In this document: piece by piece, positions 4,409-34,082 of the stretch | Layout of the letters: each line of letters starts with the position of its first letter | Numbering within the stretch: the stretch's first letter is position 1 | Notes under the pieces: model-generated | What the model saw: the letters and a program-made list of their open reading frames with translations, nothing else | What the model was told of the DNA's origin: nothing | Database searches by the model: none | Program-made: the position numbers and the translations under genes | From: Asterias rubens | Lineage: Eukaryota | Assembly: GCF_902459465.1 (NCBI RefSeq) | Contig: NC_047069.1 | Location: 17,236,001 to 17,300,000 of the forward strand | Reading direction: 5' to 3' | Length of the DNA: 64,000 bases

Positions 4409-4894
4409 ATGGATTGCATTGCCGGTTGTAAAATGGAAACCGAAGTTGCTGCCAGCTCCATCGCAATTGACATTCTCCAAGCTGAGGTTGATCTTCATCT
4501 TGGACCACAAGAAAACATCATCGAGACAGTCGTTGAGACATTGGAAGACCACCTCATTGAGACAACTGAAACCTTAGAGGATGCTGAGGCGTCGTCTGAT
4601 GATGTAGTCAGAGACAAGGGTGAGACGTCAATAACCCAGGAGCTCTCTGATGGGTTTAAGATCATCCAGTCCCAGAGGAACAGAAGGAAGTTGATGGATG
4701 GGGAGGGCTTCACATACACCCTAAAGAAGGAGAGCGAAAATAAGGTTTTCTGGAGGTGCTCTGTTCGTAATAAGAATATGTGCTGCCGAGCAACAGTCAT
4801 CCAGAATGGTGATTCATTCAAAAAGGGTAATCATGCTCACCTTCATGGTCTGGAGGTAGCCAAAAGATCCAGCAGAAAGAAAATTTCTTTTGAG
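4409..4894 (+). CDS. FLYWCH-MULE-derived gene 1, coding exon 1 (acidic N-terminus plus FLYWCH zinc finger 1)
   Basis: LMDGEGFTY..WRC..C..HAHLH FLYWCH pattern; acceptor TTCGTAG at 4387; in-frame stop upstream of ATG 4409; donor GAG|GTAAGT; 486 nt, phase 0. Confidence 0.85.
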
Positions 4895-5039
4895 GTAAGT
4901 GTACTTTTTCTATTAACTTCATTACACAGGGATGTGATTTCCGTAGTTTTAAAACGGGATTCTGTTTTTTGTTTTCCTCAAAAAAAGAAATTCCTTTGAA
5001 AGATAAAATTCTAAAAGAAACGGAGATACATGTACCTAT

Positions 5040-5228
5040 TTAAGGCAGTGGACACTATTGGTAAATACTCAAAATGATTATTATCATAAAACCTTACTTG
5101 GTAGCGAGTAATGGGGAGAGGTTGATAGTATAAAACATTGTGAGAAACAGCTCCCTCTGAAGTGGAGTAGTTTTCGTGAAAGAAGTAATTTTCCACGAAT
5201 TTGATTTCGAGACCTCAGATTTAGAATT
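5040..5228. mobile_element. Truncated Kolobok-like family A MITE (left half)
   Basis: TTAAGGCAGTGGACACTATTGG start; homologous to the 1157-1510 copy. Confidence 0.75.
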
Positions 5229-6595
5229 CCAGTTGGGCTGAAAACACGGGCAAAAATTTGATGCACGGCTTGGGTGAAGCCAGGCTGTATAATAATTTAA
5301 GTGAAAATTACTGAACTTCTTTTATTTTATTTTTTTTTTGAACAGTTTAAACAGCAGTGAGTAAAATTAGATTTGGTTTTACCAGATTTCCTTCTTCTTT
5401 TTGAATCAAAATTTCAACGACGCAACCATAAAACAATCACTCGAAGTTGCCTCGAAAACGCTGACCACATTGCGACCACACAAAACACAACGCACAAACC
5501 ACCACACATTACACAACGCACGTGCAAATTACACAACGCAAGCGAGACACGCAGACTTCGTTTTAACAGTCAGTCGTCGTCATCGACCGTCATCAGCAGG
5601 CAGCATGAACTCCATGCACACGTGGTATGATGATAGAGGCGACTTCACACGCGTTTTCGTTCAGATTATTTTAGGTACCAATCTCATCTCCACGATCCTA
5701 CAAACCATCGCGCTCTGGATTTTTCTACTATGACGTCAGTATCGGTAACTAAGTGACACGCGGGGCAGTGCACCTTTTACCGCATACATTCTGCAGTTGC
5801 TTTGTAGATTGGTTTTGCTGTAGGGGGGATAGACCTCCCAAATTTATTTTTCAATGGAACTACTTAAATGGCACTGTCTTCCGTAACTGTTTGTTCTTTA
5901 TTCTCTGCAGACTGTTTACAAATTGCCTTTGACCCAGTTTCAACAAACAACCTATAAGACTTAAACGTTATGAAACCAAAACATATACATGTACTAAGGA
6001 AAATATTAATTACCATGATCAGTCAGTTTAAATTAAGCAAACAATTATGGTACATGTAAATCACTCTTGGCATTTTGATTGGTTGCAAATACTTGTGTGA
6101 ATCATTATTTTACATTAATTAATTGATTTGTTTAAATTAAATACAAAAACTATTATCAGCTTCTTGACCTTAGGCCTATAGTTCTGAAATCGAATGGACA
6201 AGAATGGATAGAAAATTAACATTAGTAAATGATAACTCTTAATTTCTTCAATACCTCTTCATTTTTTTTTTTAGTCTTTAAGCAAAAATGTGTATCAAGA
6301 GTAACACATGCCAACAAATATTTTGTTGACAGCAACCTTGTACTGCATTATTTGATCGCTTTTGAATCATTTCAGGCTAAATGGGTCCAAGCGCAGCTCC
6401 ATGGTCCAAGTAACTGCTTTGAACTGGCCTATTGACCCAGACACATTTTATAGAGTTTAATAATGTATAGTGGACGTCGATCACCTTTACAATATCTGTG
6501 CTCTAATTTTCGAGTTGAAAACAAAACAAAAATTAAATCAAAATAGTTTACTTGTAACAGAAATAGGTACCAGAAATGCTTCCAGGGCCCTTAAG

Positions 6596-6640
6596 AGGGT
6601 GGGGGGGGGGGGGGGGGGGGGTTGGGGGGGGGGGGGGGGG
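6596..6640. repeat. Poly-G tract
   Basis: ~40 nt nearly pure G. Confidence 0.95.
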
Positions 6641-6776
6641 TGAGACAGACTTGGCGCTGCGCGCTCGTGTTGTGTGCTACGCACACGTTTCTATTTTTTT
6701 GTAGTGATTTTAGGTTGCACTCCCACTTTTTCAGTTTGCACTCCCACTTTCCAAATTCCTGGCTAAGACACTGATT

Positions 6777-6972
6777 CCAGGTCTCAAAATCAAGCATCTG
6801 AAAGCACACAACTTCATATGACAAGAGTATTTTTTCTTTTCATTATTGTCTCGCAACTTCGACGACCAATCGAGCTCAAGTTTTCACAGGTTTGTTATTT
6901 TATGCACATGTTGAGATACACCAAGTGAGAAGACTGGTCTTGACAATTACTAATAGTGTCCAGGGTCTTTAA
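6777..6972. mobile_element. Truncated Kolobok-like family A MITE (right half)
   Basis: Ends AATAGTGTCCAGGGTCTTTAA. Confidence 0.75.
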
Positions 6973-7550
6973 CCATTTAATACTGCCCAGGACTGCAGAG
7001 TGAGGCTTTAAAAACTAATGATAAATGTTAATAATTGGGCTTCATCCTTTCAAAATTTCTAGCTCGCTTTGCGCTCAGAGTTTTGTTTCTTTTCTCAACA
7101 GCCTATCAAATCCCTGAATATGTCAGAATGCGTCAGAGGTTTTATGAGCTTTAATAGTCAAAAAATATTTTTGTGATTAAGATTTTAGATTTCCCAATAG
7201 AAAATTGGGGAAATTATAATTTTCTAGTTAGAGACTTAACCTCACATTAAAATGGTGTAAAATGGTGTAAAATGCAATTTTGTCTGCCGTCATGTGTAGT
7301 TTTTTTTTATTTTACCAAAAACGTTTGATCAGATAACACATCACATAAATTAAATATATGGTCTGTACATTTAATGTACTGGGGAAATGTCAGTTCATAT
7401 CGATACCAAACAACTATAAATTTGAGCTTATGACTGGCATAGATATTCATTTTTTGAATAATACAGACATATGTGTTTTTGCAGTTTGCTGTAAATAAAA
7501 AAAACATTAAACAAAATAATAAAATCTTTTTTCTTCTTTTTGTAATTCAG

Positions 7551-9047
7551 AAATTGGGATTAACCAAGATAAAACGAGAGTCCACCAAGAATATTTTGAC
7601 GTTCCAACCTCAAGCCACTGATGGCCAAGCGCTATACGATGGACAGACTGATGAGACAGAACAAGGAGGAGGTTACACCATCATACGGAGTTCATCCCAG
7701 AGACTTCATCCCAGATTGATTGACGATGCGGGCTACACCTACACCATGAAGTCAAAAGGCAGTGAAAAAACACAGTGGAGATGTTCCGTACGAAACAAGA
7801 CCACATACTGCCGGGCGACAGTCATACAGCAAGGTAAAAACTTCAAGAAGGGGGCATTTGTGCATATTCACCCGGGCAATCCAGGACGTCATATGGTAGA
7901 GAAGATTATTGCTCAAGTTAAGACCAATGCCAAGCTGAAACCATTTCAGCCGGCAAGCAATATCGTAAATGAAGTACTCACTGCAAATGTTGGCAACCGA
8001 GAACTCCCTGGCATGCCGCATCCTACTAATCTTGCTCGTGCTGCCAATCGCATGAGGCAAAGAGTTCAAGGAAAAGGTCTTGACTTCCAAGATGGCTTAG
8101 TCCCAGAGGACTTTGTGAAGAGAGTTGTCAACCGCGGGAAGAAATGCCATTTTCTACTGGCCACCAATAACCAGTTACAAATTCTCTCCCACATGACACA
8201 GTGGTACATAGATGTAAACACAAAGATCGTGAACTCACCTTTTAAGTTGCTGTTGTCCGTGCATGGCTTTGTGAAGAAAAATCACCAAGCCAAAGTTGTG
8301 CCATTGTTCTTTGCGCTAATGTCTGGCAAAAAGCGAAAGGACTTCACAACTGTGTTTAATGCGTTGACAGAGTTAATTCCAGATGGTATCCGTGTGACAG
8401 AGTGCATGCTTGACTATGATACCAATTTGTGGAGGGGCCTTAATGACGCCATCCCAAATCTAGAATGTGTTGGTAGCGCCTACCATTGGATCCAGACCAT
8501 TTGGGGTAACATTAAAGCCTTTGGGCTTCATCTGAGTTACCTAGAAGATCCCAAGGTGTTTAAGCTGATGAGGAAACTCATGGCCCTACCATTCATCCCA
8601 GCTGAACTCGTACCAGAGATGCTCACAAAGCTACAGCAGAAGGCCACCACAGGGTTAGTGCATCAACTCCTGAACTACGTTGAGGCAACGTGGGTTGAAG
8701 GTGATAAGTGCCTGTGGTCACCATCAGCATGGAGTGTGTACATGCAGCCGTATCGAACATGCAACGACCTTCACAACTGGCATGACCGTCTGAGCAAAAT
8801 AGGCAAGAAAGGACGTCTTCCGCTGAGTGCCTTGGTGCTACAGTTGTATGGTGAAGCTAAGGTAGCATTGCAGGTTATGATCATATACGATGGGGTCCAG
8901 AAGAGGCCTCAGGAGGAATCTAACAAGGCTGTACAGAATAAAACCTCAAGATATTGGGACGATTATCAGCAACAAAGGAAGTCATTAAAACATCTCCTGA
9001 AAGCTTGTGCTGCCACTGTGGTTGACGAAGGTTATGTTGAAAACTAA
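7551..9047 (+). CDS. FLYWCH-MULE-derived gene 1, coding exon 2 (FLYWCH 2 plus MULE transposase-like domain); joined protein ~660 aa
   Basis: Acceptor TTTGTAATTCAG at 7550, phase 0, in frame with exon 4409-4894. MULE-like motifs WYIDVNT, LDYD, GSAYHWIQ, RTCNDLHNWH; ORF intact. Confidence 0.88.
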   Translation, partial: KLGLTKIKRESTKNILTFQPQATDGQALYDGQTDETEQGGGYTIIRSSSQRLHPRLIDDAGYTYTMKSKGSEKTQWRCSVRNKTTYCRATVIQQGKNFKKGAFVHIHPGNPGRHMVEKIIAQVKTNAKLKPFQPASNIVNEVLTANVGNRELPGMPHPTNLARAANRMRQRVQGKGLDFQDGLVPEDFVKRVVNRGKKCHFLLATNNQLQILSHMTQWYIDVNTKIVNSPFKLLLSVHGFVKKNHQAKVVPLFFALMSGKKRKDFTTVFNALTELIPDGIRVTECMLDYDTNLWRGLNDAIPNLECVGSAYHWIQTIWGNIKAFGLHLSYLEDPKVFKLMRKLMALPFIPAELVPEMLTKLQQKATTGLVHQLLNYVEATWVEGDKCLWSPSAWSVYMQPYRTCNDLHNWHDRLSKIGKKGRLPLSALVLQLYGEAKVALQVMIIYDGVQKRPQEESNKAVQNKTSRYWDDYQQQRKSLKHLLKACAATVVDEGYVEN

Positions 9048-11384: not shown

Positions 11385-11820
11385 TTGATTTTTAGCTGGA
11401 TTTGAACCTGAAACTTCTGTTTTTATAAGTAGATGCTCTACCAACTGAGCTTTATCTATAGACTGAATATTTGTGGTATCCCTATGTTTGTGGTTGCCAA
11501 CCTCTGTATTTACATGTAGGTGCTCTACCAACTGAGCTTCATTATTGGTGGTATCCCTATGTTTGTGGTTGCCAACCTCTGTATTTACATGTAGGTGCTC
11601 TACCAACTGAGCTTCATTATTGGTGGTATCCCTATGTTTGTGGTTGCCAACCACTGTATTTACATGTAGGTGCTCTACCAACTGAGCTTCATTATTTGTG
11701 GTCTCCCTATGTTTGTGGTTGCCAACCACTGTATTTACATGTAGGTGCTCTACCAACTGAGCTTCATTATTGGTGGTCTCTCTATATTTGTGGTTGCCAG
11801 TCGGAAGCCATTCAAGCTGT
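11385..11820 (-). repeat. tRNA-SINE head with internal 75-bp tandem amplification (~4.5 units)
   Basis: Each unit contains AGCTCAGTTGGTAGAGCA (A-box) on the minus strand; a single GGTTCAAATCC B-box at ~11398-11408. Confidence 0.8.
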
Positions 11821-12526
11821 AATTGCCATGTAGACTGGGATCGCGTCCAAATTTCAGATACAACCTGGTTCAAGTCCCACTCAGTCAGTTTTCCATGCGG
11901 TTTTTTTCTATTTGTAGTTCAAATAGTACTGTTTTTGTATGTCGCCCCCAATCTTGAAGAAAGAATGCACTTAAGATTTGTGAGAAAAATCAAAGGAACA
12001 CCAAAGGAAGTGGGTTCAACAAGGAGATTCTGCCCCCCCCCCCCTCTCTCCTCCAATACGGCGAACTGTGTACAAACTACTTCTGATAGCGCCCTCTTTT
12101 GAAACATCCTCTTTAGCCCCTGTTAGTTTTTTTTTAAATGGGTGACAGAATCTTTGGCCGACCGATTTCCCTGGGACACCGGGCCCGTATTGGATAAGGC
12201 TCGGCTCCTGCTTTCTGTTTGTTCAATGCTCGAAGAGAATGTTGCATGCAGAAGAACGTAGTGCGAATTGGGTGAATCTGCCCCAAGACCATCATCAATC
12301 CGATTGGTATATTGACAATCTCATTTCAACCGGAGTGTGTTTCGGTTACTGTTAACTGTTTCTAGGACCAATATTCAACAAATGGAAAGTTTTTGTAAAT
12401 AATTATTGTCGTCATCGAAAATCAAGACATATGACTAATTTAATGTTGGGCAATTGCCTATACTGGCTATGTGTCTGAGGAAAATACCAATTGGAGGGAA
12501 TCGTTTTGTGTGCGTAAACCTTTATA

Positions 12527-12536
12527 GGAAATCCCC
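12527..12536 (-). promoter_or_regulatory. NF-kappaB consensus site (GGGGATTTCC), cassette 1 promoter
   Basis: GGAAATCCCC on plus strand; fits GGGRNNYYCC; same position as the site in unit 2. Confidence 0.55.
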
Positions 12537-12745
12537 CCGCGTGTACACCCCATGGCTAAGTTTGGCTCTGCTTACCGCCCAATTATGCACGTACGATTCA
12601 CCGCTTATTATACTAGATTCAAGTTCTTGGGATAGGCCTATACATGGCTGCATGAGCTAAAATCATACGCATTGTGACCATTTTGAAAACGGTACATAAT
12701 TCAAAAGCGCTCGAACGAGATTGGTTGAGTGACCTTTCGCCCTAA

Positions 12746-12755
12746 CCAGGAAGTG
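12746..12755 (+). promoter_or_regulatory. Ets-family site CCAGGAAGTG (also 15281-15290 and 18685-18694)
   Basis: Identical in all three cassettes, ~140 bp upstream of each ATG. Confidence 0.55.
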
Positions 12756-12891
12756 CGGCACCATAAGATGAGTATTTTATTCGATTACAAGCAGTATAGA
12801 GTTTGTCATTCATGCTGCACGAGTTCAGCACAACTATCTGAACTAATACCGTGCAATAAACAGACTTATAGTGATCTGCATAGAGGCAACT

Positions 12892-12958
12892 ATGAAGTCA
12901 CAAATTCTTAGCTTATACTGTGATTCACGTCTCATTGCTTTGCTTATTTTTCTTGAAG
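12892..12958 (+). CDS. RTK variable cassette 1, signal-peptide exon (MKSQILSLYCDSRLIALLIFLE-G)
   Basis: ATG, hydrophobic core, donor AAG|GTAAGC; 67 nt, phase 1, matches the V1 acceptor. Confidence 0.85.
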
Positions 12959-13562
12959 GTAAGCTTGACATTATTTATAATTATAAGTTCATTGGTAAAA
13001 CTCAATTACCTATTTTGTTCAACCGCAAATAGTTTAAAAAACTTTTACCCACAGTTGAGTTTCCCTTGTGGTTTATTACTTAATATTTAATTTACAATAA
13101 AAACAGTTTGAAATTCATTTCAATTAAATCCTATGTCAAATAGGTCAAACAACAAGATCAGAACCAGAAAAAGTGCACAATATTTGGAAGCAGATAATTA
13201 ATGTACGACAATGACAACCGATTACAATCGTAAACATTCGTAAACAAAGCCTTTAAATACGTTTACCTGTGCTGTGTGTCCATACGGACCCACTTTCATG
13301 GTCAAACATAATGGCTTTAAGGCGGAATTTTGAATAACGGTTCATTGATAAAAGCAGATATTATTACAAAAACAACCACATCGAGCAATTTATTGTTGAT
13401 TTTCCTATACGAAGTAATACTAGTAATTAATCAACATAATAATGTAGGGGAGCTTTTTCAAGCCCTCTTAAAAACAATTTGCCGTAAAACGATAATTAAA
13501 AAAAAAGGGGAGCAAACAAAATAAGATTTTAAGCACGAAGCAATTGCCCTTGATTTTTGCAG

Positions 13563-13901
13563 GAGTTACTACACGGCCAGTTATTTCTGGCGAAGCATGG
13601 GCAGATATTGGAATGGACACCGTCTTGACATGCTCACCTGGAGATGGAACGTTATTACAAGTTAGATGGAGAGATAGCAGCTTCAACAATGATGATATTG
13701 ACAACACGATCACTATAGCGAGAGTTGTGTTAGCAACTGGGGATCTCATCAACAGAGATGAGACGCATTATGGATTTGATCCAAATGATCCTTTGTATCC
13801 ATTAACAATAAAACAAGTGACATTGGATGATGAGGCTAAGTACTGGTGTCAGGTGTACATTGCTGGTTTTATACATGACACAAAGGAAATGCGAATAAGA
13901 G
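13563..13901 (+). CDS. RTK variable cassette 1, V-type Ig exon
   Basis: TTTTGCAG acceptor; C..W..LTI.QV.LDDEAKYWC V-set motif; AG|GTAGGA donor; 339 nt, phase 1-1. Confidence 0.92.
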
Positions 13902-14630
13902 GTAGGAACCCAGCTATCAAATATCATTTTAATGCACATTATGTTACCATAGAAATGAAACAACTATATATGGAATTGCTACAGGAGTGTTACCTATAAT
14001 TTTATATCAGAATGCAAAGTCTCTGTCTCTTTATTCAAAGTCTATTGCGGTTAAAGCCACAGGCGTGAACCTGGCTGCAGGTGGACTGGCAAAACTCTCT
14101 AGACTTGGAGAACTGCCTAAAGAATTAACAACATATTCATGTGGAACAGTATACCTTATTATTCGTCATGCATGCTGATTGTCTAAAGTGAGTACAACGC
14201 AATGTTCCACTCAGCATACTCCCCTCATTACAACGAATGTCATTTTCTTTTCAAAAGAGAAGTGACTGGACTTTTGCCCAAAATGATCAAGAGAGCATTT
14301 TGTCATCTTCACAAAAATAATGTAGCGGAAATGCACCTGACGAACATGTGACACCAAAAATTTAACTTCTATGTTTTTGCTCCATTTTTATAAGGTGGGT
14401 CATGGAGCAAGGTCATGCGGCTATCTCCCGTACGATTGACTTTCTTTCACAAAGAGTGATGATTTATTCTACCTCAACCATACAAAAACAAAAAGTACAT
14501 AACAAGGCACAATAAAGAAAATCAAATCGAAACAGGAAAAACAAAAGAAAAGATACCCTTCCTTAATATAATCATTGAATCTCCTTTAAAACTATTGGGA
14601 ACTTCCGTATACAAACTTCTGCTTCAAGGA

Positions 14631-15017
14631 TTAAAGGCAGTGGACACTATTGGTAATTGTCAAAGACTAGCCTTCACAGTTGGTGTATCTCAACACATGC
14701 ATAAAATAACTAAACTGTGAAAATTTGAGCTCAATCGGTCATCAAAGTTGCGAGATAATAGTGAAAGAAGAAAACACCCTAGTCACACGAAGTTGGGTGC
14801 GTTTAGATGGTTGATTTCGAGACCTCGAGTTCTAAACTTGAGGTCTCGAAATCAAATTCGTGGAAAATTACTTCTATCTAGAAAACTACTCCACTTCAAA
14901 GGGAGCCGTTTCTCACAATGTTTTGTACTGCCAACCTCTCCCCATTACTCTTTACCAAGTGAGGTTTAATGGTAATAACTATTTTGAGTAATTACCAATA
15001 GTGTCCACTGCCTTTAA
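14631..15017. mobile_element. Complete Kolobok-like family A MITE at the unit 1/unit 2 junction
   Basis: TTAA-AGGCAGTGGACAC...GTGTCCACTGCCT-TTAA. Confidence 0.9.
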
Positions 15018-15078
15018 TATTCAACTGAAGGAAAAATACCAATTGGAGGGAATCGTTTTGTGTGTGTGAATGTTTATA

Positions 15079-15088
15079 GGGAATTCCC
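15079..15088. promoter_or_regulatory. Palindromic NF-kappaB consensus site (GGGAATTCCC), cassette 2 promoter
   Basis: Exact motif at the homologous position, ~350 bp upstream of the ATG. Confidence 0.55.
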
Positions 15089-15427
15089 CCGCGTGTACAC
15101 ATGGCCAAATATTTGGCTATGCATAACGCCGAATTATGCACGTACGATTCACCGCTTACTTGATTCAAGTTTGTGGGATATAGGCCTATAAAACGCATTG
15201 TGCCCATTTTGAAGAAAAAAAAATTAAGGTACAATTCAAAAGCGCTCGAACGAGATTGATTAGATGACCTTTAACCCTTACCAGGAAGTGCGGCACCATA
15301 CATTAGTTTTGTATTCGATTAAAAGCAATAGTATAGAGTTTGTCATTGCTGCACGAGTTCAGCACAACTATCTGAACTACAAAACCGTGCAATTAACAGA
15401 CTTATAGTGATCTGCATAGAGGCAAAA

Positions 15428-15491
15428 ATGAAGTCACAAATTCTTAGCCACTGTGATTCACGTCTCATTGTTTTGCTCATGTTTCTTGAAG
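15428..15491 (+). CDS. RTK variable cassette 2, signal-peptide exon (MKSQILSHCDSRLIVLLMFLE-G)
   Basis: 64 nt, phase 1, GTAAGC donor. Confidence 0.85.
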
Positions 15492-16020
15492 GTAAGCGTG
15501 ACACTATTTACAATTATAAGTACATTTGTAAAATTCAATAACCGCAAATAGTTTCAAAAAGTTAACCAGTGAGTTTCCCTTGTTGATTATTACTTAATAT
15601 CTTATTTACAATGACTACAATTTGAAATTCATTTCAATTAAATCAATGCGTCAAAAAGGTGTCACAAGATCAGACAAAAATGTACGATAATGACAATCGA
15701 TTGCAATCGTAAACATTCGCCTTTAAATACATTTACGTGTGCTGTGTGTCCATACAGATCCACTTGCTGGTCAATCAACATATTAGGCTTTAAGGCGGAA
15801 TTTTGAATAACAGTTCATTGATGAAAGCAGATATTAATACAAAAACAACAACATCGAGCAATTTATTTTTGGATTTTCTCATGCCAAGTAATACTGGTTT
15901 TTAAAACGACAAATAATTTGTATGGGTAGCTTTTTCAAGCCCCATTAAAAACAATTTGCCGTAAAACGATAGTTAAAAAAAGGGGGGAACGAAAAAGATT
16001 TAAAGCATAAGGCAAGTGTC

Positions 16021-16196
16021 TTAGGCCCTTTTCGAAACCACGGCTTCGGCTTTGGATTCGGCTTCAGGCTCCATCCTGTCGTCTGAAGCCCTGGGCGCGT
16101 ACGCAAAGCACGCGCAAATTGTCAAAACAACCGAGGGGCCAATCTAGCCTGAGCCGAATCCAAAGCCAAAGGCGTGGTTTCAAAAAGGGTCTTAAA
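16021..16196. mobile_element. Harbinger/Tourist-like palindromic MITE with TTA target duplication
   Basis: TIR GGCCCTTTTCGAAACCACGG..; absent at the homologous site of unit 3 (GTGTCTTAGAGAG). Confidence 0.75.
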
Positions 16197-16215
16197 GAGC
16201 CGTTGATTTTTGCAG

Positions 16216-16554
16216 GAGTTACTGCACAGCCAGTTATTTCTGGAGATACATGGGCAGATATTGGCTTGGACACCAGTTTGTCATGCTCACCAGGAGATGC
16301 AATATTACTACTGAGATGGGGAGATGGCAGCTTGAACAATGATAATATTTCAAGCATGTCTACTATAGTGAGAGTGGTGATACCAACTGGGGATCTCATA
16401 AATAGAGATGAGACGCATTATGGATTTGATCCAAATGATCCTTTGTATCCATTAACAATAAAACAAGTGACATTGGATGATGAGGCTAAGTACTGGTGTG
16501 AGGTGTTCGTTGGTGGTGTTTACAGAGATGACACAAAGGAAATGCGAATAAGAG
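16216..16554 (+). CDS. RTK variable cassette 2, V-type Ig exon
   Basis: 339 nt, phase 1-1; same splice contexts as V1. Confidence 0.92.
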
Positions 16555-17004
16555 GTAGGAGCTCAACTATCAGATTTGTGATGTGGATTGCTACAGGAGG
16601 GTTACCTATAAGTCAGAATGCAAAGTCTCTGTCTCTTTATTAAAAATCAATTGCGGTAGTCTCTGTCTCTTTATTAAAAGTCAATTGCGGTTAAAGCCAC
16701 AGGCGTAAACCTTGCTGCAGGTGGACTGGCAAAACTCTCTGGACTTGGAGAATTGCCTAGCAGATTCATGTGGTACAAAGGCCTACCTTATTATTCGTCA
16801 TGCATGCTGATTGTCTGAAGTGAAGTAAAACGCAATGTTCCACTCACCATACTCCCCTCATTACACCGAATGGCATTTTCCTTTCAAAGAGAAGTGACTG
16901 GACTTTTGTCCAAAATGTTCAAGAGAGCATTTTGTCATCTTCACAAAAATAATGTGGCGTATAAATGCATGTGACGAACATGTGACAGTAAAGATTTAAC
17001 TTCT

Positions 17005-17172
17005 CTTGTTGTGATTGTTGGGGTTGAACAAAGAATTGACTAGAATTGGATTCGAGCCAACGACCTCCGGATTAACGTGCCGGCGCTCTACCAACTGAGA
17101 TATCTAACCCTATGTTGGCGGTGTCCCTATTTTGTCAATGTCTTTGTTCGGGGTGCCAGTCAGAAGCCATTC
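17005..17172 (-). mobile_element. tRNA-derived SINE inserted in unit 2 only
   Basis: Reverse complement carries TCAGTTGGTAGAGCGCCGGCACG (A-box) and GGCTCGAATCC (B-box); absent at the matching site in unit 1 (~14370); a related copy lies at ~55585-55735. Confidence 0.75.
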
Positions 17173-17574
17173 TCTTATTTTGCTCCGTTTTTATAAGGTG
17201 GGTCATGGAGCAAGGTCATGCGTCTATCTCCCGTACGATTGAGTTTTTCTCAAAACAGTGATGATTTATTCGACCTCAACCATACAAAAACTAAAAGTAC
17301 ATAACAAGGCAAAACGAAGAAAATCGAATCGATCTGGAAAAAACAAAAACAAAGCAAAAAATAACCTTCCGTAGTATAATCATTGAATCTTCTTTAAACC
17401 ATTGAACTTCCGTATACAAAATTCTGCTTCTAATATTCAACAAATGAAAAGTTTCTGTAAATAATATTTGTCCTCATCGAACATCAAAACGTTAGTCATT
17501 AGTTGGGCAATTGCCCATACTGGCTATGTGTCTGAGGAAATTGGAGGGAACCGTTTTGTGTGTGTGCGCTTCAT

Positions 17575-17880
17575 ATCTGCTTATGTTCCTTCAAGTTACG
17601 CTATAATACCAAAAGGTACGCTTTCAATCCCATGTCAAGTTACGCTTACGTTCCAAGATACGCAGCTACGAATTACGTTCCAAGATATGCTTACGCTCCA
17701 AAAGATACTGTTACGTTCCAAGCTACGCAGCTACTCAGCTACGCTTATACACTCCAAGATACGTTTAGGTTACGCTACAATATCAAAAAGTACGCTTTCA
17801 ATCCCGAGTCAAGCTACGCTTACGTTCCAAGATCTGCAGCTACGGTTACGTTTCAAAATACATTCTCACAAAGACGCTTT
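17575..17880. repeat. Degenerate TACGC/CAAG tandem repeat block inserted in the unit 3 promoter
   Basis: Repeated TTACGCT..TTCCAAGA units and an internal duplication (~175 bp period). Confidence 0.8.
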
Positions 17881-18827
17881 TGAATCCCTCAAGATTTCCT
17901 TCCCCCAAGATTAAAAAACTTTCACTGTGAATAACACTACAGGGCCCACCAGTTAACATCTGTTTGGCAGAAAATACTGTACAAAATTGCTTTACTATCC
18001 AAAAATTTAGGTGGGCACTAGGCATAAGTCTACAACATTTCAAATTTAATTAAAAATTGGCTGGTCACCAGTTTCTTCTAAGCAATACTATTTTGTGCTA
18101 ACTATAAGCAAATTGTTTAGCCAATACAGGCTTCATCAGTGTGGGCCCTGGCACGTCGGGAGCATAACGCCACGATCGCATTTCAAGCTGCATCGTGGCA
18201 ATGCAGTAGTCTGGATCTGGATATTATACATAGAAAGGTTTGTGGTGGTACCGCAAACCTTTCTTTATCGTATTTCCACCATGTGGCAAAGTTTCAAATC
18301 CTACTGATCTGGACATTATTATACTCCGATAAAAACATATACCCACACACACATGCAGAGTATAGCAAAAGTCATGCAACGCAATTACTGCATGCATTGT
18401 ACACTGCATGCGCAACACTGATGAATTATTCATGAGCCAACCGCAACGCAGCCACTGTTTGGCTCCACCGGAAAGTCGGGGGAGATTTGCCGAAAAACAA
18501 TAAAAAAGTTAAGACCCGTCGTTGCAAATGTCCTAGACCTTGGTGAGCACAGGAAATCAGAGAAACAGAGCGCCCGCTAGCGTTCGTTCATTACAAGCGT
18601 GTACAGTTTTTGCCGTGCATAATCGGAACGTTGGTTTTGTGTGACCACGCAACACCAATGGTCTAGGAACCTAGACTACCCTAACCAGGAAGTGCGGCAC
18701 CATAAAATAAGTATTTTATTCGATTACAAGCAGTATAGAGTTTGTCATTCATGCTGCACGAGTTCAGCACAACTATCTGAAAAACCGTGCAATTAACAGA
18801 CTTATAGTGATCTGCATAGTGGCGAAA

Positions 18828-18876
18828 ATGAAGTCACGTGATTCACGTCTCATTGTTTTGCTTCTTTTTCTTGAAG
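18828..18876 (+). CDS. RTK variable cassette 3, signal-peptide exon (MKSRDSRLIVLLLFLE-G)
   Basis: 49 nt, phase 1, GTAAGC donor; in-frame deletion relative to cassettes 1 and 2. Confidence 0.82.
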
Positions 18877-19325
18877 GTAAGCGTGACATTATTTACAATT
18901 ATAAAGGTAGGCCTACATTTGTAAAATTCAATTACTTTTTGTGTTGAACCGTAAATAATTTTTAAACAAATTACCCGGGTGAGTTTCCCTTGTGGTTTAT
19001 TACTTAATACTTTATTTACAATAACTACCATTTGAAATTCATTTCAATTAAATCCATGTGTCAATAAGGTCCCACAACAAGATCAGAACCAGAAAAGGTG
19101 TAATTGGAAGCAGATAATTAATGTACGACAATCACAACCGATTGCAATCGTAAACATTCGTAAACAAAGCTTTTACATACGTTATCCTCTGCTATGTGTA
19201 TGGACCAACTTTCAGGTCAATCAACATATCATGCGGAACTTTGTATAATGGGAAATTCATTATTTTAAAACAGCAATTTGTTCAAAAACAACAACATCGA
19301 GCATTGTTTTAAATTTTCTTTATAT

Positions 19326-20320
19326 ACTATAGGTTTTCTCGGTCAAATTCGGCAAATGAGCAGCCAATTTCATTTTCAGGCGCTCGAATTAAAGCTATTT
19401 TGCCTCTCCGGTTTTTACTGTGTTTCAAACTCAGAATTCGGTCATTCTATTTCGTTTTGAGGCATTCAAGTACCTAGCACACTCATTCTTTTTCATGACA
19501 CACAATCAACATTCAATTTAGCAAAGCTGGTTCGACTAGAGATTTTGCTGATTTAATCATTTTCAGTTTCGTAAAGAGGCAATTAATTTCGCTCACCGAG
19601 GATTCAAATAAGTACGACTAAAGAAATACGAATACATGTAAACAGAAAAACTGTGCAAACCGTTTCGTACTTTCACAGGTTCAAGATGGAATGCTCTCTT
19701 CAAAAAGGCGAAGTCGAGTTGAACACTAAAATCAATCTTTAAAAAACTGAAGAAAAAAAATTCTTTATTTTATGTTTCCAGTAGACTTTACCTTGGGTCC
19801 CACAAGGGTTGTTTTCTTCTTTATTTTTTCGGGAGACCTACAATGGTTAACTGACCAAGACCTGACATTTGAATAGGTTTGAATGGTTTTTTAGTTTTTT
19901 TTTAAATGTTTTTAAATATTCACCAACCATCTGTGTTGGCGTGCCAGACATCTTTGGCAAATTATGTTCAAGAGTGCCAAAACATTAACCGCATGCCTTT
20001 AACATTCGTATAAGGAAACAACAAGTTAACCAAGCGTTTCTAAGACTGCAAAACTATCAGAATTGACTGCCTCAAAATGAAATCGAATGACTAAACACGC
20101 GCCTCAAAAACACTCCTGAGAATTTGAATGCAGCTTCGATGAATTGTTAAATTGAATGATTATTTTGTTAACTCGAATTACGTAAAAGTAGAATTGACTA
20201 GTCTTAAAATGAAATCGAATTACCCTTTTTTAGAAGCATTCGATTTCGTGCGAAATAGAATAGGCTGGTGGTTAAATTGGCTGCTCATTTTTCCGAAATT
20301 GACCGAGAAAACCTATAGTA
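19326..20320. mobile_element. ~1-kb non-autonomous TIR DNA transposon in cassette 3 intron
   Basis: TIR CTATAGGTTTTCTCGGTCAA.TTCGG.AAATGAGCAGCCAATTT at both ends; empty site in units 1 and 2. Confidence 0.8.
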
Positions 20321-20465
20321 ATTAAAACGAAAATTAATTTGCAGTGCAGCTTTTTCAAGCCCCCTTAAAAACAATTTGCAGTAGAACGATACGTAAAAAG
20401 AAGAGGCAATGAATACGTTTTAAAGCACAAAGCAAGTGTCTTAGAGAGTTGTTTATATTTTGCAG

Positions 20466-20807
20466 GACTGACTGCACAGCCAGTTACTACTGGCGAAGCA
20501 TGGGCAGATATTGGCATGGACACCGTCTTGACATGCTCACCTGGAGATGAAATATTACAACTGAGATGGAGAGATAGCAGCTTGAACAATGATGATTATG
20601 ACAACACATCCATTATAGTGAGATTGGTGAAAGCGTCTGGGAGTCTCGTCAACAGAGATGACACACATTATGGATTTGATCCAACTGATCCTTCATATCC
20701 ATTAACAATAAAACAAGTGACATTGGATGATGAGGCTAAGTACTGGTGTGGGGTGATAGATGTTAATGGTTTTAACAAAGATGACGCAAAGGAAGTGCGA
20801 ATAAGAG
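20466..20807 (+). CDS. RTK variable cassette 3, V-type Ig exon
   Basis: 342 nt, phase 1-1; TTGCAG acceptor; AG|GTAGGA donor. Confidence 0.92.
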
Positions 20808-21212
20808 GTAGGAGCTCAACTATCTTTGTATCATTGTCATCTAGATGCTGAACAGGCTTTGATGAGAACCAACATAGCTGTAAAATGCACATGTGATACC
20901 ATGGTAATGAAAAATATTATGAAATTGCTACAGGAAGTTAGCTATAGGTTTGTATCAGAATGCAAAGGTCTCTTTATTCAAAGTCAATTGCGGTTAAGCC
21001 ACAGGCGTGAACCTGGCTACAGGTGGATTGACTTGGAGAAATGCCTAAAGAATAATATAACCGATTCATGTGGTACATAGTTTTGTTATTCGTCATGCAT
21101 GCTGATTGTCTAAAGTGAGTAAATCGCAAGGCGAACATTATTCCACACACTGATTCCCTCATTACACTGAATAACATTTTCATTTTAAAAGGGAAAAGAG
21201 AGCATTTTTGTC

Positions 21213-22165
21213 AGTCACCTGGAAGTGGTATTTTTTCAAAATAAAACTTTTACAGATTTGTGTTTTGATGAGTGGAATGTGAATAACAATTAACTAAGGT
21301 TCTAAAAAAAATCGTCCTCATTTTATAAATACAAATTTAAGAGTAGACCCCACCCGAGAGGGCGCTGTTTGTGACGTCAATCGAGGCGCGACATTTGAAG
21401 AGAAAATGTGTAGTCTGGGCTCCTTAAACTACGTCTGGGTACCTGATTGATCGGTATGATGCCTACGTACACAACTATGGCCACGGAGCAGACTGCTGCG
21501 CGCACTACGGATGCTGTGCATGCGGACGGTCCATGAATCGCAATTCTAAAAACATGCCCTCAAAGTTAAAACTTTTAGCCGAATTATTCACGTTTGGCAT
21601 ACGCTCTTCTAGGTTCGTCACGTCTTTCAGGTACCTTCTTTGATTTCTCACTCTTGAAAAGTTGTTGGGATGGCTTCATAATCTTTCTCTTCATGTCAAA
21701 TGTGTGGTGTATTCCGGATTCGAAGCACGACGGCTCGAAGTGTTCGCTGCACAGCGCTGGAAAAGACGTCGGCCCGGACCACTGTTGCTCTTGTTAGTCC
21801 GACTTTCGCGGCCCACAACCACCCATACTTTGTATCTGCAGGAAACACATGCAACTTAACCCCATCTTTGTTGTTTTGCTGCATCCAGCAGCAATACACC
21901 TGGTCTACATTGCCGGGAAAAAAGAAGAAAAAAAAACTTTTTTCGAAACGTACAAACTCACGACTTGGACCGCATGTACTTTGCACGTGTGTTTACTCTA
22001 TACGCCTTGTAGGCAACGCCTGCCTCGATTGACGTCACAAAAGGGGTAGGCGGAGTCAGCCCCAAACAACTTTATCTATTTTTTAAACTTATAAATCGTG
22101 ACAAACAATTACTTAAATTTTGTTTTATTGTCCATAAGCTTAATACTCTTATGTTTGAAAGATTT
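21213..22165. mobile_element. Kolobok-like element (AGTCACCTGGAA family), longer inverted relative of 29911-30489
   Basis: Shared arms with TGACGTCA and CCCGAGAGGGCGCTG motifs. Confidence 0.7.
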
Positions 22166-23273
22166 TTGTTTATAAAGACAACAACGCAGTAAAGGACTTG
22201 TTATAATATGGTTATAATATGGACAACTGCTCAGAGTGAGTGCACTGCAATGGCCTCCTTCAAAGAAGTTTTTAAGAGTGCGATAATGGGGGGGGGGGGG
22301 TTGTGTCAGCGATCAAGTACGACAAAATGCATGTACAGAACGGGCATGTTCAATACCCAACATAGCTCTTGTTAATGCACACCGGGCTCTGCACTGTGGC
22401 GACCACTTCTTTTTTGCGCTGCATGTGCTGTGTCATGTTTTGTTCTGGTAAAACATGTCGGCCATTTTTAATATGAGTTTCGTCTTTTGGGGTCTGTTCG
22501 AGTGCATCATTATGTCGTCAGGCCAAGAATGTTCGTGCAATAGTTTTTCGTGTGTTATTTTATTGTGTATTTAAAGATATTTATGCACAAACCACAACCT
22601 AATGAAGTTGGCAGCTTCACGAATGCCTGAATGAATTGTGTAGCGGGACGCTTTATTAAAACTTGGTCACTTCGCCATTTTGTGACTTTCCTGAGTAAAG
22701 TAGCTACATAAAACACCGTAGGGTTGATATTGCTGCTGTTCAAAGGTCACTGAACAGGGCCAGATAGAGTTTGCGATAAGGTTCTAAAATCCTCAGGGAA
22801 CTTTCTCCGGTTTTAAGGGACCGTTTTCAGTGGTGTTCCGTTCACAGTTCCTCAAAATTTGGAAAACTGCAGATGGCATTCCTGTTGCTAAAACTTGTAA
22901 ACCTAGAGTGCTTTGACGGATTGTTAAAGATTTCATTGTTGAGCAAACTTCATCTTTCATTGATCCCTTGCATTTTGCCGATTTCACATTTTTGCAAACT
23001 AATAAAACGCTCACTGAGCGATAAACTCCAAACGGTTTTTAGGTGAAAAAAGGCAACCAAACGCATGTGTACACATAGAATGGCCAGTTTGGACGAAAAT
23101 GGCATATCTATAGCAACTACGCGAACTGGCCCCTAGAAAACTGGACCCTTTTTTACGGAGTGGCGCAATAAGGCCTCGGTAAACTTGCATTTGGCCTGTT
23201 TTCACACCAGTGAATCGTTAGAATTAAACTATATCCAAGTCCATCACATTAATGTCTGTTTTTTAATTTCCAG

Positions 23274-23618
23274 TTCCGCCTGCTACCATTTCTTTAACCT
23301 ATAAGAATACCATCTACGCCGACCAAGCTGATGTTGAAGTGATAGCAGGAGATGGTCATCAGTTTAGTTGTGAGACGCTCGGCATCAAACCTAATGCAGA
23401 CTTCACCTGGACTCTTCAGGGTACACCACTTTACCAAGGACTTCCTGGGACTGCCACTCCTAATAGTGGAGATAGCAGATTGAGTGACAGCTTGAGTGCA
23501 GTATCTGTGAATGTTCCAGAGAGTCCGGCAGTGCAGCAACTGACATGTGGTGCTACTAACAGACAAGATGGGAATACAGATACTGAGAAGGATACTTCAG
23601 TAACTATACAAGTCAAAG
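23274..23618 (+). CDS. RTK constant exon, Ig domain 2
   Basis: TTTCCAG acceptor; VPPATI..FSCE..FTW..LTCGA; AAG|GT donor; phase 1-1. Confidence 0.9.
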
Positions 23619-24205: not shown

Positions 24206-24532
24206 TTCCTCCAATATCATCCAAAATGACTCTCCAAGGAACCAACTCAGACGGTACATTATCTGTAGATGAAGGTTTGATGAGCACAATCACATGCGTT
24301 GTTATGGGTACCAGACCATCTGCAGATATCAAGTGGTTTCTCAACGGTGTAATGCAGTCTGGTGGTACAGTATCCCCACCTTCAGCAGACTCTGATGAAC
24401 TATATGATACCACAGGATCTTGGTGGATTACTCCAACTAGGAACAACCATAAAGATGAGATGATGTGTCAGGCAAGCACTCCACAATCACACGGAGATCT
24501 ACCAAAGGTGACAGCAGTACTCAATGTGAATG
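24206..24532 (+). CDS. RTK constant exon, Ig domain 3 (C2/CD80-like)
   Basis: ITCVVMGTRPSADIKWF..MMCQA; phase 1-1. Confidence 0.92.
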
Positions 24533-24965: not shown

Positions 24966-25268
24966 GTCCTCCAGACACTCCGAGCATAACCGGCAATACA
25001 CAAATGACTGAGAATGTACAAACTAGTCTGATGTGTGAAGCAGACATGGGGTTTCCAGACGATTGGAGTTTACATTGGTTCAGAGAAGATACAGCAATAA
25101 CACCTAACCCTACCACAACGCCTTCATCCTCAGGAACTCGCTTCATGTTCACCAGCACTCTGGACTTCACACCAATCAGAGAATATAATGGACATACCAT
25201 CAAGTGTGGTGCACAAAAGAATTCAATGAGTGGTTCAACGGCAAAGCTAGGTCCGATAGATGTTCAAT
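24966..25268 (+). CDS. RTK constant exon, Ig domain 4
   Basis: GPPDTP..LMCEA..LHWF..YNGHTIKC; phase 1-1. Confidence 0.92.
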
Positions 25269-25987: not shown

Positions 25988-26305
25988 TCTGTGCAAGATA
26001 TGTGACCATCATGGCATGTGCGACTGCCACTGCTGGCAACACTGCTGTATTAAGATGTGTATCTGGCAGTAGTAACCCAGGCACTACACTGACATGGTCA
26101 AGAGATGGTATGGATCAAACTAACACTAGTCCTCAACCAGACTCTGATGGTAGCAATGGAGGCATCATCACTACACTAGACATCGCAACCAACGTGTTAA
26201 CTAAAGATGACAATGGTGCTGTATTCCAATGCAGTGCGTCTAATGATGCAGTCACGTGTGGAGTCGACATTGACGTCACTGATTCATGTACACTGAATGT
26301 GCAGT
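25988..26305 (+). CDS. RTK constant exon, Ig domain 5
   Basis: LRCVSGSSNPGTTLTW..DNGAVFQC; phase 1-1. Confidence 0.92.
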
Positions 26306-26786: not shown

Positions 26787-27083
26787 ATACTCCTGAGTTT
26801 ACTGCAGCCTCAGTCAATCCCGTCACCCCAGTCATTGAAGGTGGTGAAGTCATCCTTACATGTACTGCAGATGCTAATCCTAAACCTAGTAACTTCATCA
26901 TGTGGGAGAAGCAAGACTCCCCCGGTACAGTACTTAGCAGTGTTTACAATGATGGAACCAGTACTCTAACATTGAGTGATATCCAGAGAGATCAAGCAGG
27001 GAGCTATAGATGCAAAGCTAACAACGGGATACCAACGAGTAAATCAGATGTGTTTTCGGCATCAGTGATTGTCAAAGTACACT
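26787..27083 (+). CDS. RTK constant exon, Ig domain 6 (I-set)
   Basis: YTPEF..LTCTADANP..W..DQAGSYRCKANN; phase 1-1. Confidence 0.92.
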
Positions 27084-27501: not shown

Positions 27502-27828
27502 ATGAGGTTAATGTCACCAACAAAGAGGACAATGAGATGGGTGTAAGGGATAACAATGATGCCAACTTAACATGTAAGGCAGTCGGCAATCCAGCGCCTG
27601 TCATGATGTGGTTTGATCCAGACAACGCTCTCATTTCTAGCACCAGAAATCCCGATAAGTACGCAGTAGAAGATACCACTATCGGGGATGACATCTATGG
27701 ATTCATGGTGATCAGTACCTTGACGATCAAGAGAGTGGACTCACGAGTTGACTTTGGAGTTTATACATGTCGCAGTTCTAATGGGATCGGACAGGTGGAC
27801 ATGCTGATGGTAGTTGTTAATAGAACAA
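27502..27828 (+). CDS. RTK constant exon, Ig domain 7 (I-set)
   Basis: LTCKAVGNPAP..W..DFGVYTCRSSN; phase 1-1. Confidence 0.92.
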
Positions 27829-27964: not shown

Positions 27965-28249
27965 GAAGACCAAATCAGCCGTCCGGTTTGGTATTGAACG
28001 GCCGTACTTCAAGCTCAATAGCAGTAAGATGGTCAGCTGGTTATGATGGTGGTGAGAATCAGTGGTTTCATGTCAGCCATAAGAAGACTGCAGACTCCTC
28101 AGAGACATTCAGCGATAGGATTGATGGAGGGGTGACTACATACAACGTGGATGGTCTCGAGTCATACACGGAGTACGAGATCAAGGTCTATGCTGAGAAT
28201 GACGTGGGGAAAAATCCCAGTCCTGCCAGCGTAGTGGAATACACATTGC
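27965..28249 (+). CDS. RTK constant exon, fibronectin type III domain
   Basis: P..L...SSSIAVRW..GLESYTEYEIKVYAEN; phase 1-1. Confidence 0.93.
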
Positions 28250-30532: not shown

Positions 30533-30817
30533 GTTTAATTATTGAGTTTAACATGGATGCGGGCACAGTCAAGGTTACTGGATTGCAAGGCAAAGGATGC
30601 ATTCAGCTCGAGGTGAAGTATGAAGGTGGCTCATCATACTGGACAGAGTGTGGAGGATGTTTCACAACAGACTCTGAAGTGGTTCTAGCAGATTGGTGTC
30701 CACAAACTCAGAAACGAAGACGGAGAGCTATAGGGGATGTGGATGAAGTGCAGGCAAAGTATTGCCAAGGGAGTGGCGATAGTACACTCTGTAGTGATCC
30801 AATAACTCCTGAGGAGA
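30533..30817 (+). CDS. RTK exon, Cys-rich membrane-proximal domain with furin-type site KRRRR|A
   Basis: CACTATAG acceptor; A|GTAAGT donor; phase 1-1. Confidence 0.88.
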
Positions 30818-31882: not shown

Positions 31883-32014
31883 ATTCGCCTTCTACTCCTC
31901 CCAAGGCCATCAACCCTGGTGTCATTGTCGGTGTCGTTGTCGGTGTCATTCTGCTTGTCGTCATTGTCATTTTAGCTTATAGTCTGAGGAGTAGACTTCA
32001 GTGTCATATTGAAG
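31883..32014 (+). CDS. RTK transmembrane exon
   Basis: NSPSTPPKAINPGVIVGVVVGVILLVVIVILAYSLRSRLQCHIE; phase 1-1. Confidence 0.92.
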
Positions 32015-33783: not shown

Positions 33784-34082
33784 AATAATGAAAGGTTGAG
33801 GTCGAGCGCAGCGTGCACTTTTCCATTGTTCTACATCCAATATGGTGGTCAACGAGGTCATGCAATCCATCCAATGCCTTAATTATTGTGCCTAGTGCGT
33901 CAACCACACAGGGCTTACTTTTTACTTGTACCTATCAATCCTTACGAAAGACCCTCGCCGAAGTATTGGTTCTTCTCAATCATCTCATTTGAAGCCTACC
34001 TTTTATCACTTTGACGACACGACTATTCGTTAGTTTTTTTTTTTTTTAACAGGCAGGTAATCCATTTCTTTTTTAACTCCAG

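Follow-up and report, generated by a model that had tools for sequence, protein, structure and literature searches.

The 5′ end of a receptor tyrosine kinase gene in Asterias rubens (LR699099.1) carries three tandem units, each made of an upstream block, a leader exon and a V exon, and these are followed by one set of constant exons. Our preferred reading, to which we give a probability of roughly 60%, is that this gene belongs to an IgSF receptor tyrosine kinase family of starfish (Asteroidea), and that its 5′ end is an array of two-exon cassettes with their own promoters, from which V-swapped receptors of ~1340 aa would be made. The anatomy put forward in the original prediction, three promoter + leader + IgV modules 5′ of a single constant RTK body, is right as judged from the DNA, with the promoters as candidates, and every position given there for the leader and V exons was recovered. 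By using the modules singly, the gene could probably swap its outermost recognition domain. Coordinates refer to the window, the whole 64 kb stretch that was analysed.

12742-13901, + strand: first variable unit
12742-12891, + strand: upstream block 1, candidate core promoter and 5′UTR, with the ETS-like motif ACCAGGAAGTGCGGCACCAT at 12745-12764
12892-12958, + strand: leader exon 1 (signal peptide), 67 nt, ATG at 12892, ending in phase 1
13563-13901, + strand: V1 exon, V-set Ig, 339 nt, phase 1/1, Pfam V-set E=7e-5
15278-16554, + strand: second variable unit
15278-15427, + strand: upstream block 2, ETS-like motif at 15280-15299
15428-15491, + strand: leader exon 2, 64 nt, ATG at 15428, 3-nt in-frame deletion relative to leader 1
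16216-16554, + strand: V2 exon, V-set Ig, 339 nt, phase 1/1, V-set the best Pfam family
18678-20807, + strand: third variable unit, the last before the constant exons begin at 23274
18678-18827, + strand: upstream block 3, ETS-like motif at 18684-18703
18828-18876, + strand: leader exon 3, 49 nt, ATG at 18828, 18-nt in-frame deletion relative to leader 1
20466-20807, + strand: V3 exon, V-set Ig, 342 nt, phase 1/1, Pfam V-set 27.0 bits

The upstream block and the leader core each occur exactly three times in the window, against a chance expectation of 0-0.05. The ETS-like motif is likewise found exactly three times, once per block, and tblastn detects only three V-like matches. As had been claimed, the V exons are intact, being open, in phase 1 at both ends and with their splice sites kept. 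Leader and V donors and acceptors are all preserved in the three units: the leaders end in AAG/gtaagc (12958, 15491 and 18876), each V exon ends in GAG/gtagga, and the V acceptors are strong (tttttgcag/G or attttgcag/G). The leader donors match the consensus at 7 of 9 positions versus 6 of 9 for the V donors and are only marginally stronger. The intron between leader and V exon measures 604-1589 nt. The signal peptides were called by eye only.

The 150-nt upstream blocks are 93-95% identical among cassettes 1-3. When the leaders are included, identity is 93-96% in every pair of units, versus 77-86% for the introns; between units 1 and 3 this amounts to ~9 mismatches in 196 aligned bases of upstream plus leader DNA and ~61 in 378 of intron. 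The homology of cassette 3 to the other cassettes begins abruptly at about -150. A separate promoter for each unit would fit the conserved block with its motif in all three and the RefSeq coding sequences that start at leaders 1 and 2. Conservation of the upstream blocks could also arise from gene conversion between cassettes, which would involve no selection.

Self-BLAST reveals a tandem triplication of ~2.5-3.4 kb at 73-83% identity that takes in upstream DNA and introns. High identity is patchy, being found in the second half of the V exon and, for units 1 and 2, over 151-450 nt past the V donor (92%), and this shows that gene conversion has occurred. Tandem repeats are in general error-prone in assemblies. 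As an artefact, the triplication would stem from a haplotype joined wrongly or from a repeat that was collapsed or expanded. Nothing specific at this locus favors such an artefact, and we regard it as highly improbable. The units are 12-25% diverged from one another, and they differ in their transposon insertions:

14630-15018: MITE, unit-specific insertion
16023-16192: palindromic element, unit-specific insertion
17037-17109: tRNA-like SINE, unit-specific insertion
19319-20326: element of ~1 kb, unit-specific insertion

Moreover, an independent marine-metagenome contig is 93.5% identical to cassette 2, intact and bounded by cassette-2-specific flanks, and homologous loci in two other assemblies share the array design.

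Downstream of the units lies the single constant set, from 23274, that the original prediction had described as six Ig domains, FN3, TM and an intact kinase. Exon borders bear this out, as does Pfam for the Ig and FN3 exons.

23274-23618, + strand: constant exon C1 (Ig), acceptor ttccag/, proposed to receive every V donor
24206-24532, + strand: constant Ig exon C2, phase 1/1
24975-25268, + strand: constant Ig exon C3, phase 1/1
25988-26305, + strand: constant Ig exon C4, phase 1/1
26787-27083, + strand: constant Ig exon C5, phase 1/1
27502-27828, + strand: constant Ig exon C6, phase 1/1
27965-28249, + strand: FN3 exon, Pfam fn3 E=8.7e-13
30533-30817, + strand: Cys-rich stalk exon, from tblastn to homologues
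31883-32014, + strand: transmembrane exon with the 21-residue hydrophobic stretch GVIVGVVVGVILLVVIVILAY
33912-34028: candidate juxtamembrane exon, 117 nt, left out of the 1340-aa V1 model
34083-34280, 35114-35224, 35851-36038 and 36942-37064, + strand: kinase exons 1-4, open frame
37793-37904, 38091-38187, 38750-38849 and 39014-39091, + strand: kinase exons 5-8, stop at 39089-39091

The constant exons have AG/GT borders throughout, and C2-C6 fall into the Pfam families C2-set_2, Ig_3 and I-set. With a signal peptide, an ectodomain, a single TM and an intact catalytic core in an open frame that includes the DFG, the product has the features of a receptor tyrosine kinase. Its kinase is 62% identical to that of Acanthaster, and over its whole length the model shows 46-48% identity to Patiria RTKs with PF07714. 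When a Patiria homologue is used as the query, the family kinase is nearest to FGFR1/2 among solved structures (E=1e-87). The ectodomain is similar to nephrin/Kirrel, and the kinase to FGFR. Spliced models of the three single-V isoforms are all open, at 1340, 1339 and 1335 aa. The predicted length of ~1379 aa for the V1 isoform is reached only with the candidate juxtamembrane exon, and our V1 model without it gives 1340 aa.

V-set is the top Pfam family for all three variable exons, with V3 above the gathering score of 26 and V1 and V2 just below it. The AlphaFold2 model of V1 (pLDDT 95.9) contains the C′ and C″ strands; in the PDB it matches VHH/VH domains and CRIg best, with TM 0.75-0.8 to VH/VHH. 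We are confident from this model that V1 adopts a V-set fold: the profile match, the Cys-Trp-Cys core and all nine strands, C′ and C″ included, are present. The differences among the V exons are concentrated in the BC, C′C″ and FG regions, where 17 of 25 positions vary, versus 27 of 87 elsewhere (Fisher p=0.001). This suggests that the three domains have distinct binding specificities coupled to one kinase output. From small counts, dN/dS is 1.5-2.0 for CDR-like codons and 0.5-0.9 for framework codons; over the whole V exon it is ~1, a value that neutral decay would also yield.

The last of these values is consistent with an alternative in which the receptor draws on a single cassette (3 or 2, for instance), the remaining ones being recent duplicates that stay silent, decay or are expressed as short secreted leader + V proteins. 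The fairly recent duplication (dS 0.14-0.18) fits this alternative too, as does RefSeq, which splits the locus and annotates leader 1 spliced to V1 as a gene of its own with a 167-aa read-through product (XP_033631696.1). We nevertheless consider partial function unlikely. ATGs, frames, Cys23/Trp35/Cys95, donors and acceptors are intact in three of three units, and all indels, in V exons as in leaders (3 and 18 nt), are in frame. In every pair of units, conservation of the upstream blocks and leaders exceeds that of the introns, and framework dN/dS is below 1. Neither the tails read through past the V donors (32, 29 and 14 aa) nor poly(A) signals are conserved, evidence against V proteins made on their own. 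Finally, the metagenome contig supplies an intact copy of cassette 2 from a second dataset, and the RefSeq models of homologues employ all of their cassettes.

At the A. rubens locus itself, no RefSeq model joins V1, V2 or V3 to the kinase. A second model there, of 470 aa, has a coding sequence that begins exactly at the leader-2 ATG. The exon combinations that we enumerated for it give 466-475 aa; one with a non-canonical donor inside C2 has exactly 470 codons, yet it is implausible as a model.

The RefSeq (Gnomon) isoform models of homologues display the proposed joining of cassettes. In Acanthaster planci, five tandem leader + V cassettes are each joined straight to the C1 homologue, an exon to which A. 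rubens C1 is 50% identical; from that exon onward, the C-terminal 1231 aa are the same in isoforms X1-X5, which differ in their leader + V N-termini. An A. rubens paralogue on LR699108.1 has three cassettes that are each singly spliced to the same constant exon. A. amurensis has more than 10 isoforms per gene, with common suffixes of 824-830 aa and differing leader + V N-termini. These models indicate a starfish-wide family trait; the RefSeq names of homologues are nephrin-like, SYG-2-like or hemicentin-like. The original prediction presented the arrangement as not known to have been described for an RTK; we likewise found no paper describing it, but the design is already latent in public isoform models from three species.

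The three cassettes arose by tandem duplication. In the mechanism that we consider most likely, one of the three upstream blocks would supply the transcription start. The leader would then be spliced to the V exon of its own cassette, and the donor of that V exon to C1 (23274), giving receptors of ~1340 aa in which the membrane-distal V domain is the sole difference. Phases and splice sites are compatible with single splicing of each unit to C1, as modelled for the five Acanthaster cassettes and three in the A. rubens paralogue. Because every ectodomain exon, V and constant alike, is phase 1/1, some transcripts from upstream promoters probably keep a downstream V exon and encode two- or three-V receptors, in line with the annotation of paralogues.

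If such retention were the norm, promoter choice would be real but would generate a nested series, L1-V1-V2-V3-C, L2-V2-V3-C and L3-V3-C, in which the number of V domains varies and no domain is swapped. Several observations are consistent with this alternative. The V1-V2-V3 combination is open in a spliced model at 1568 aa. V exons with good acceptors would lead default splicing to tandem inclusion, and no signal for mutually exclusive splicing was found: an inverted-repeat search of 12300-23400 recovered transposon termini only, with neither docking/selector RNA pairing nor shared pairing with the intron 5′ of C1. Two V exons occur together in isoform models of the A. rubens paralogue (X2, L15870-V16445-V23931-C) and of A. 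amurensis (X6 versus X11). However, most homologue models skip the downstream V exons, as do five of five cassette isoforms in Acanthaster and three of four leader + V cassette isoforms in the A. rubens paralogue, where X3 skips at least three. On balance we think it improbable that downstream V exons are normally kept. The predicted choice of one V exon per transcript is partly supported: it agrees with the singly spliced homologue models, but the two-V isoforms show that it is not the sole outcome.

The two-exon cassette raises a splicing question under our preferred reading, namely by what means downstream V exons are skipped despite their good acceptors. We hypothesize that the leader donor of each downstream cassette uses up the acceptor of its own V exon. 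After this nested splice, the cassette would have no free acceptor and may act like a protocadherin variable exon.

If transcripts bear out the proposed use of the array, variable first exons as known from clustered protocadherins and UGT1A would have a counterpart in an RTK of an invertebrate deuterostome, one whose V domains are antibody-like. Echinoderms would then have a germline-encoded, promoter-selected recognition repertoire coupled to one kinase output, which would bear on the origin of recognition diversity outside jawed vertebrates and on starfish immunity and regeneration biology. A role in immunity or self-recognition is speculation. It is possible, though doubtful, that starfish possess an undescribed diversified RTK system throughout the lineage, in which 3 to 7 or more promoter + leader + V cassettes are chosen per cell in a protocadherin-like manner, so that every cell or cell type would bear its own antibody-like tip wired directly to an FGFR-like kinase. 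In that case the V exons would be under diversifying selection and gene conversion between cassettes, with immune, allorecognition or neuronal self-recognition use.

Several known systems share parts of this design. Germline Ig/TCR V segments also combine a leader, a short intron, a phase 1 V-set exon and an upstream promoter element, in starfish a candidate one, in tandem arrays, with variation focused in CDR-equivalent loops, and the V1 fold is nearest VH/VHH. Unlike those segments, the starfish V exons end in a splice donor instead of a heptamer/nonamer RSS: direct reading found no CACAGTG within 8 nt past the V donor in any of the three units. The V exons also lack a J-like FGXG motif, and their joining would occur by RNA splicing, not DNA rearrangement. 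Arthropod Dscam1 similarly varies the ectodomain of a single receptor through duplicated Ig-exon arrays, which bears on immune or neuronal recognition. Its exons, however, are internal, number in the dozens and are chosen by docking/selector pairing, whereas the starfish cassettes number 3-7 and each V exon at the present locus has an ATG leader and an upstream block.

In FGFR1-3, which use a single promoter, mutually exclusive splicing swaps half of an internal Ig domain (IIIb/IIIc). Here too an RTK with an FGFR-like kinase would vary its ligand-binding Ig sequence through alternative exons, but the starfish exchange would involve a whole membrane-distal V-set domain together with its leader and presumed promoter. 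Nephrin, Kirrel and SYG-1-SYG-2, in which the membrane-distal domain makes the trans contact, likewise have FN3 after a series of CD80-like C2-set and I-set Ig domains; sequence identity to them is low, and they lack a kinase and are not known to have alternative N-terminal V cassettes. An RTK of the sponge Geodia cydonium is said to have a variable Ig-like ectodomain and to have been discussed as a recognition receptor, its variability reportedly being allelic polymorphism and not a cassette array.

Clustered protocadherins and UGT1A, where promoter choice selects a variable first exon ahead of shared constant exons, differ in that their variable modules are single, acceptor-less first exons, whereas the starfish unit is a leader plus a V exon with its own 3′ splice site. 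Tandem inclusion of two V exons in the paralogue models, and a constant part that comprises a tyrosine kinase as well as the greater part of the ectodomain, also set the starfish genes apart. As in those two systems, however, tandem variable 5′ modules precede a single constant set, a conserved element lies before each module, and what varies is the extracellular portion that serves recognition. The homologue models extend the likeness to splicing, since they join each module alone to the first constant exon and skip the modules in between.

Self-BLAST of window positions 10-25 kb reveals a tandem triplication at 73-83% identity, each unit carrying an upstream block, an intact leader exon and an intact V exon. 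These data bear out the anatomy put forward in the original prediction, three tandem leader plus V units before one constant set of exons. The V exons (V1, V2 and V3; 339-342 nt) have open frames with phase 1 at both ends, and their top Pfam family is V-set. All indels between units are in frame: deletions of 3 and 18 nt distinguish the leaders, and indels of 3 nt distinguish the V exons. The upstream block and the leader core each occur in exactly three copies in the 64 kb window, and tblastn finds three V-like exons only. The constant set was assembled from AG/GT borders and homologue alignments.

Exons of the receptor locus, in window positions (unit starts from self-BLAST; leader exons begin at the ATG and have donor AAG/gtaagc; V exons have a strong acceptor and donor GAG/gtagga)
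~12370, start of unit 1
12892-12958, leader exon 1
13563-13901, V1 exon
~15033, start of unit 2
15428-15491, leader exon 2
16216-16554, V2 exon
~17432/18678, start of unit 3
18828-18876, leader exon 3
20466-20807, V3 exon
23274-23618, constant Ig exon C1
24206-24532, constant Ig exon C2
24975-25268, constant Ig exon C3
25988-26305, constant Ig exon C4
26787-27083, constant Ig exon C5
27502-27828, constant Ig exon C6
27965-28249, FN3 exon
30533-30817, Cys-rich stalk exon
31883-32014, TM exon
34083 to the stop at 39089-39091, eight kinase exons

Joined to the constant set, leader 1 plus V1 gives an open frame of 1340 aa, leader 2 plus V2 one of 1339 aa and leader 3 plus V3 one of 1335 aa, and the kinase of the open model contains DFG. 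The length of ~1379 aa proposed earlier for the V1 isoform was not recovered, as it requires one extra 117-nt exon; a juxtamembrane candidate at 33912-34028 would supply it and was rejected for want of homologue support. Because the ectodomain exons are all phase 1/1, a V1-V2-V3 tandem would also be in frame (1568 aa). The Pfam domains (CD80-like C2-set, I-set and fn3) describe a nephrin/Kirrel-like ectodomain, and the solved structures nearest to the family kinase, queried with the Patiria homologue, are FGFR1/2.

The RefSeq annotation divides this locus differently. Leader 1 and V1 are annotated as an Asterias rubens protein of 167 aa whose frame continues past the V1 donor (XP_033631696.1, LOC117293461, on LR699099.1 of assembly GCA_902459465.3, where window position 12892 is approximately record position 17,248,892). 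The CDS of a second gene starts exactly at the leader-2 ATG and gives a 470-aa product reaching past 23999. The exon combinations that we enumerated for this product yield 466-475 aa; a non-canonical donor inside C2 gives exactly 470 codons, which we judged implausible as a model of it. Leaders 1 and 2 are thus the annotated starts at this locus, with no V-kinase join in the annotation, and a search of protein collections for spliced fragments across the V-to-C1 junction returned genomic read-through ORFs only. If the V exons instead encoded stand-alone secreted proteins, translation would run 32, 29 and 14 aa past the three V donors. Neither these tails nor their poly(A) signals are conserved, which argues against such proteins.

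The proposed splicing appears in the RefSeq isoform models of homologous genes. Searching with V1 by phmmer, and then with follow-up queries, identified a starfish-specific family, in which the closest full-length relatives of the window gene are Patiria RTKs (46-48% identity). In Acanthaster planci (locus L002, DF978751.1:268,730-307,936), the last 1231 aa of 'nephrin-like' isoforms X1-X5 (XP_022108588-593) are identical and start with VPPSTIALRYNG, the homologue of exon C1. Their five unrelated leader plus V N-termini are encoded by five tandem cassettes within ~9 kb, all spliced straight to the C1 exon (L002:20501) in the RefSeq models. In a paralogue of A. rubens itself (locus L005, LR699108.1:10,592,179-10,644,360), models X3, X5 and X4 join three different leader plus V cassettes to a common constant exon (L005:30312) and skip the intervening V exons, and X2 retains two V exons. 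At least seven leader-like exons are present in this paralogue, and the regions upstream of them are partly conserved. A. amurensis has two adjacent genes, each with 12-13 isoforms, that follow the cassette pattern; among the isoforms are two-V forms and one with an internal leader. The presence of the cassette design in all three makes it a family trait. Both L005 and L002 have larger arrays than the window, with two distinct V classes in them. A further RTK gene (1608 aa) comes after the L002 array, so the family is tandemly clustered. We do not claim orthology of the window gene to the five-cassette Acanthaster gene; the kinase-region tree did not resolve, and we therefore claim family membership alone.

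Since the V exons have good acceptors, their skipping requires an explanation. No docking/selector complementarity of the kind expected for mutually exclusive splicing was found. We propose that each downstream V acceptor would be consumed by its own leader donor, leaving a cassette without an available acceptor, and that an upstream V donor might occasionally compete, producing two-V isoforms. Leader donors far stronger than V donors were considered and rejected: leader and V donors match 7 and 6 of 9 consensus positions in the window, and the homologues are mixed. Because this difference is small and mixed, donor strengths lend the acceptor-consumption idea weak support, and we keep it as a proposal.

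Conservation among the units is uneven.

Identity between units, by region
Upstream block, -150 to -1 relative to the ATG, 93-95% for every unit pair
Leader exon, 94-96%
Start of the leader-V intron (400 nt), 77-86% with numerous gaps
5' half of the V exon, 80-85%
3' half of the V exon, 89-95%
Sequence following the V exon, 76-92%

The homology of unit 3 to units 1 and 2 starts abruptly at about -150, first with the motif ACCAGGAAGTGCGGCACCAT, which includes an ETS-type core. An ETS motif lies upstream of 3/3 leaders in the window and 5/7 in the A. rubens paralogue, but only 2/5 in Acanthaster; it is no universal mark, and we rejected it as a family-wide promoter element. The kappaB-like decamers GGGGATTTCC (12527-12536) and GGGAATTCCC (15079-15089) occupy homologous positions ahead of leaders 1 and 2, at a distance of ~350-365 nt; their whole-window count is no higher than chance, and none was found upstream of leader 3.

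V1 modelled with AlphaFold2 (24-sequence alignment; pLDDT 95.9) has complete V-set topology and, in the PDB, best matches VHH/VH domains and CRIg. The BC, C'C'' and FG regions contain an excess of positions that vary among V1-V3 (17/25 vs 27/87 elsewhere, p=0.001), with loop limits fixed after the model was seen. Between V exons, Nei-Gojobori dN/dS is 0.8-1.2 overall, and 1.5-2.0 in CDR-like codons compared to 0.5-0.9 in framework codons, all from small counts.

Cassette 2 has an independent counterpart in a marine-metagenome contig (L003; ENA ERZ23498370 scaffold_1440865). The contig is 93.5% identical to window 15964-16794, including the unit-specific intron element. Its V exon differs by 22 substitutions plus a 3-nt indel, every one of them in the first half; the second half has 0 differences, and the downstream intron has 3 in 240 nt. 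Of the substitutions, 18/~22 are non-synonymous, and L003 agrees with both V1 and V3 at 15/25 differing alignment columns. This pattern suggests either a conversion tract or rapid change in the CDR1/CDR2-coding half.

The leader-V introns measure 604, 724 and 1589 nt in units 1, 2 and 3, unequal because of unit-specific insertions: a 170-nt palindromic element in unit 2 (16023-16192) and a ~1 kb element with 38-nt inverted termini in unit 3 (19319-20326). Between cassettes 1 and 2 lies a ~390-nt MITE-like element with perfect 29-nt terminal inverted repeats (14630-15018), with many copies in the RTK introns and elsewhere (~31203-31586, 33421-33790, 34464-34860, 32372-32748, 1157-1511 and 55807-55975). 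An Rfam scan of the cassettes gave no match except a tRNA-like SINE (44.8 bits; 17037-17109, minus strand), within an insertion downstream of V2. This match and a 75-nt unit in 4.4 tandem copies at 11468-11799, tRNA-like by eye, probably both represent tRNA-derived SINE sequence. The RTK lies between FLYWCH/transposase-like genes, at 4409-9047 (+; a RefSeq 660-aa FLYWCH protein) and 42984-44492 (+; a 503-codon open frame with similar N-terminal sequence). Two histone 3'-UTR stem-loop matches in opposite orientation, ~80 nt apart (41866-41912, minus; 41991-42037, plus), only just exceed the Rfam gathering score.

Taken together, the homologues' isoform models make the cassette-swap interpretation plausible for the window gene. 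They show the splicing predicted from promoter or cassette choice; for the window gene itself that choice is a proposal. The 'Ig kappa' gene that Leclerc and co-workers published for A. rubens seems to be distinct from these V exons, compared by a 23-nt stretch and by eye: the published stretch has no window match at ≤3 mismatches, and no resemblance to the V exons is visible. Full-text literature searches found no description of such a cassette RTK. The array amounts to a new form of the variable-first-exon arrangement, one that is family-wide in starfish.
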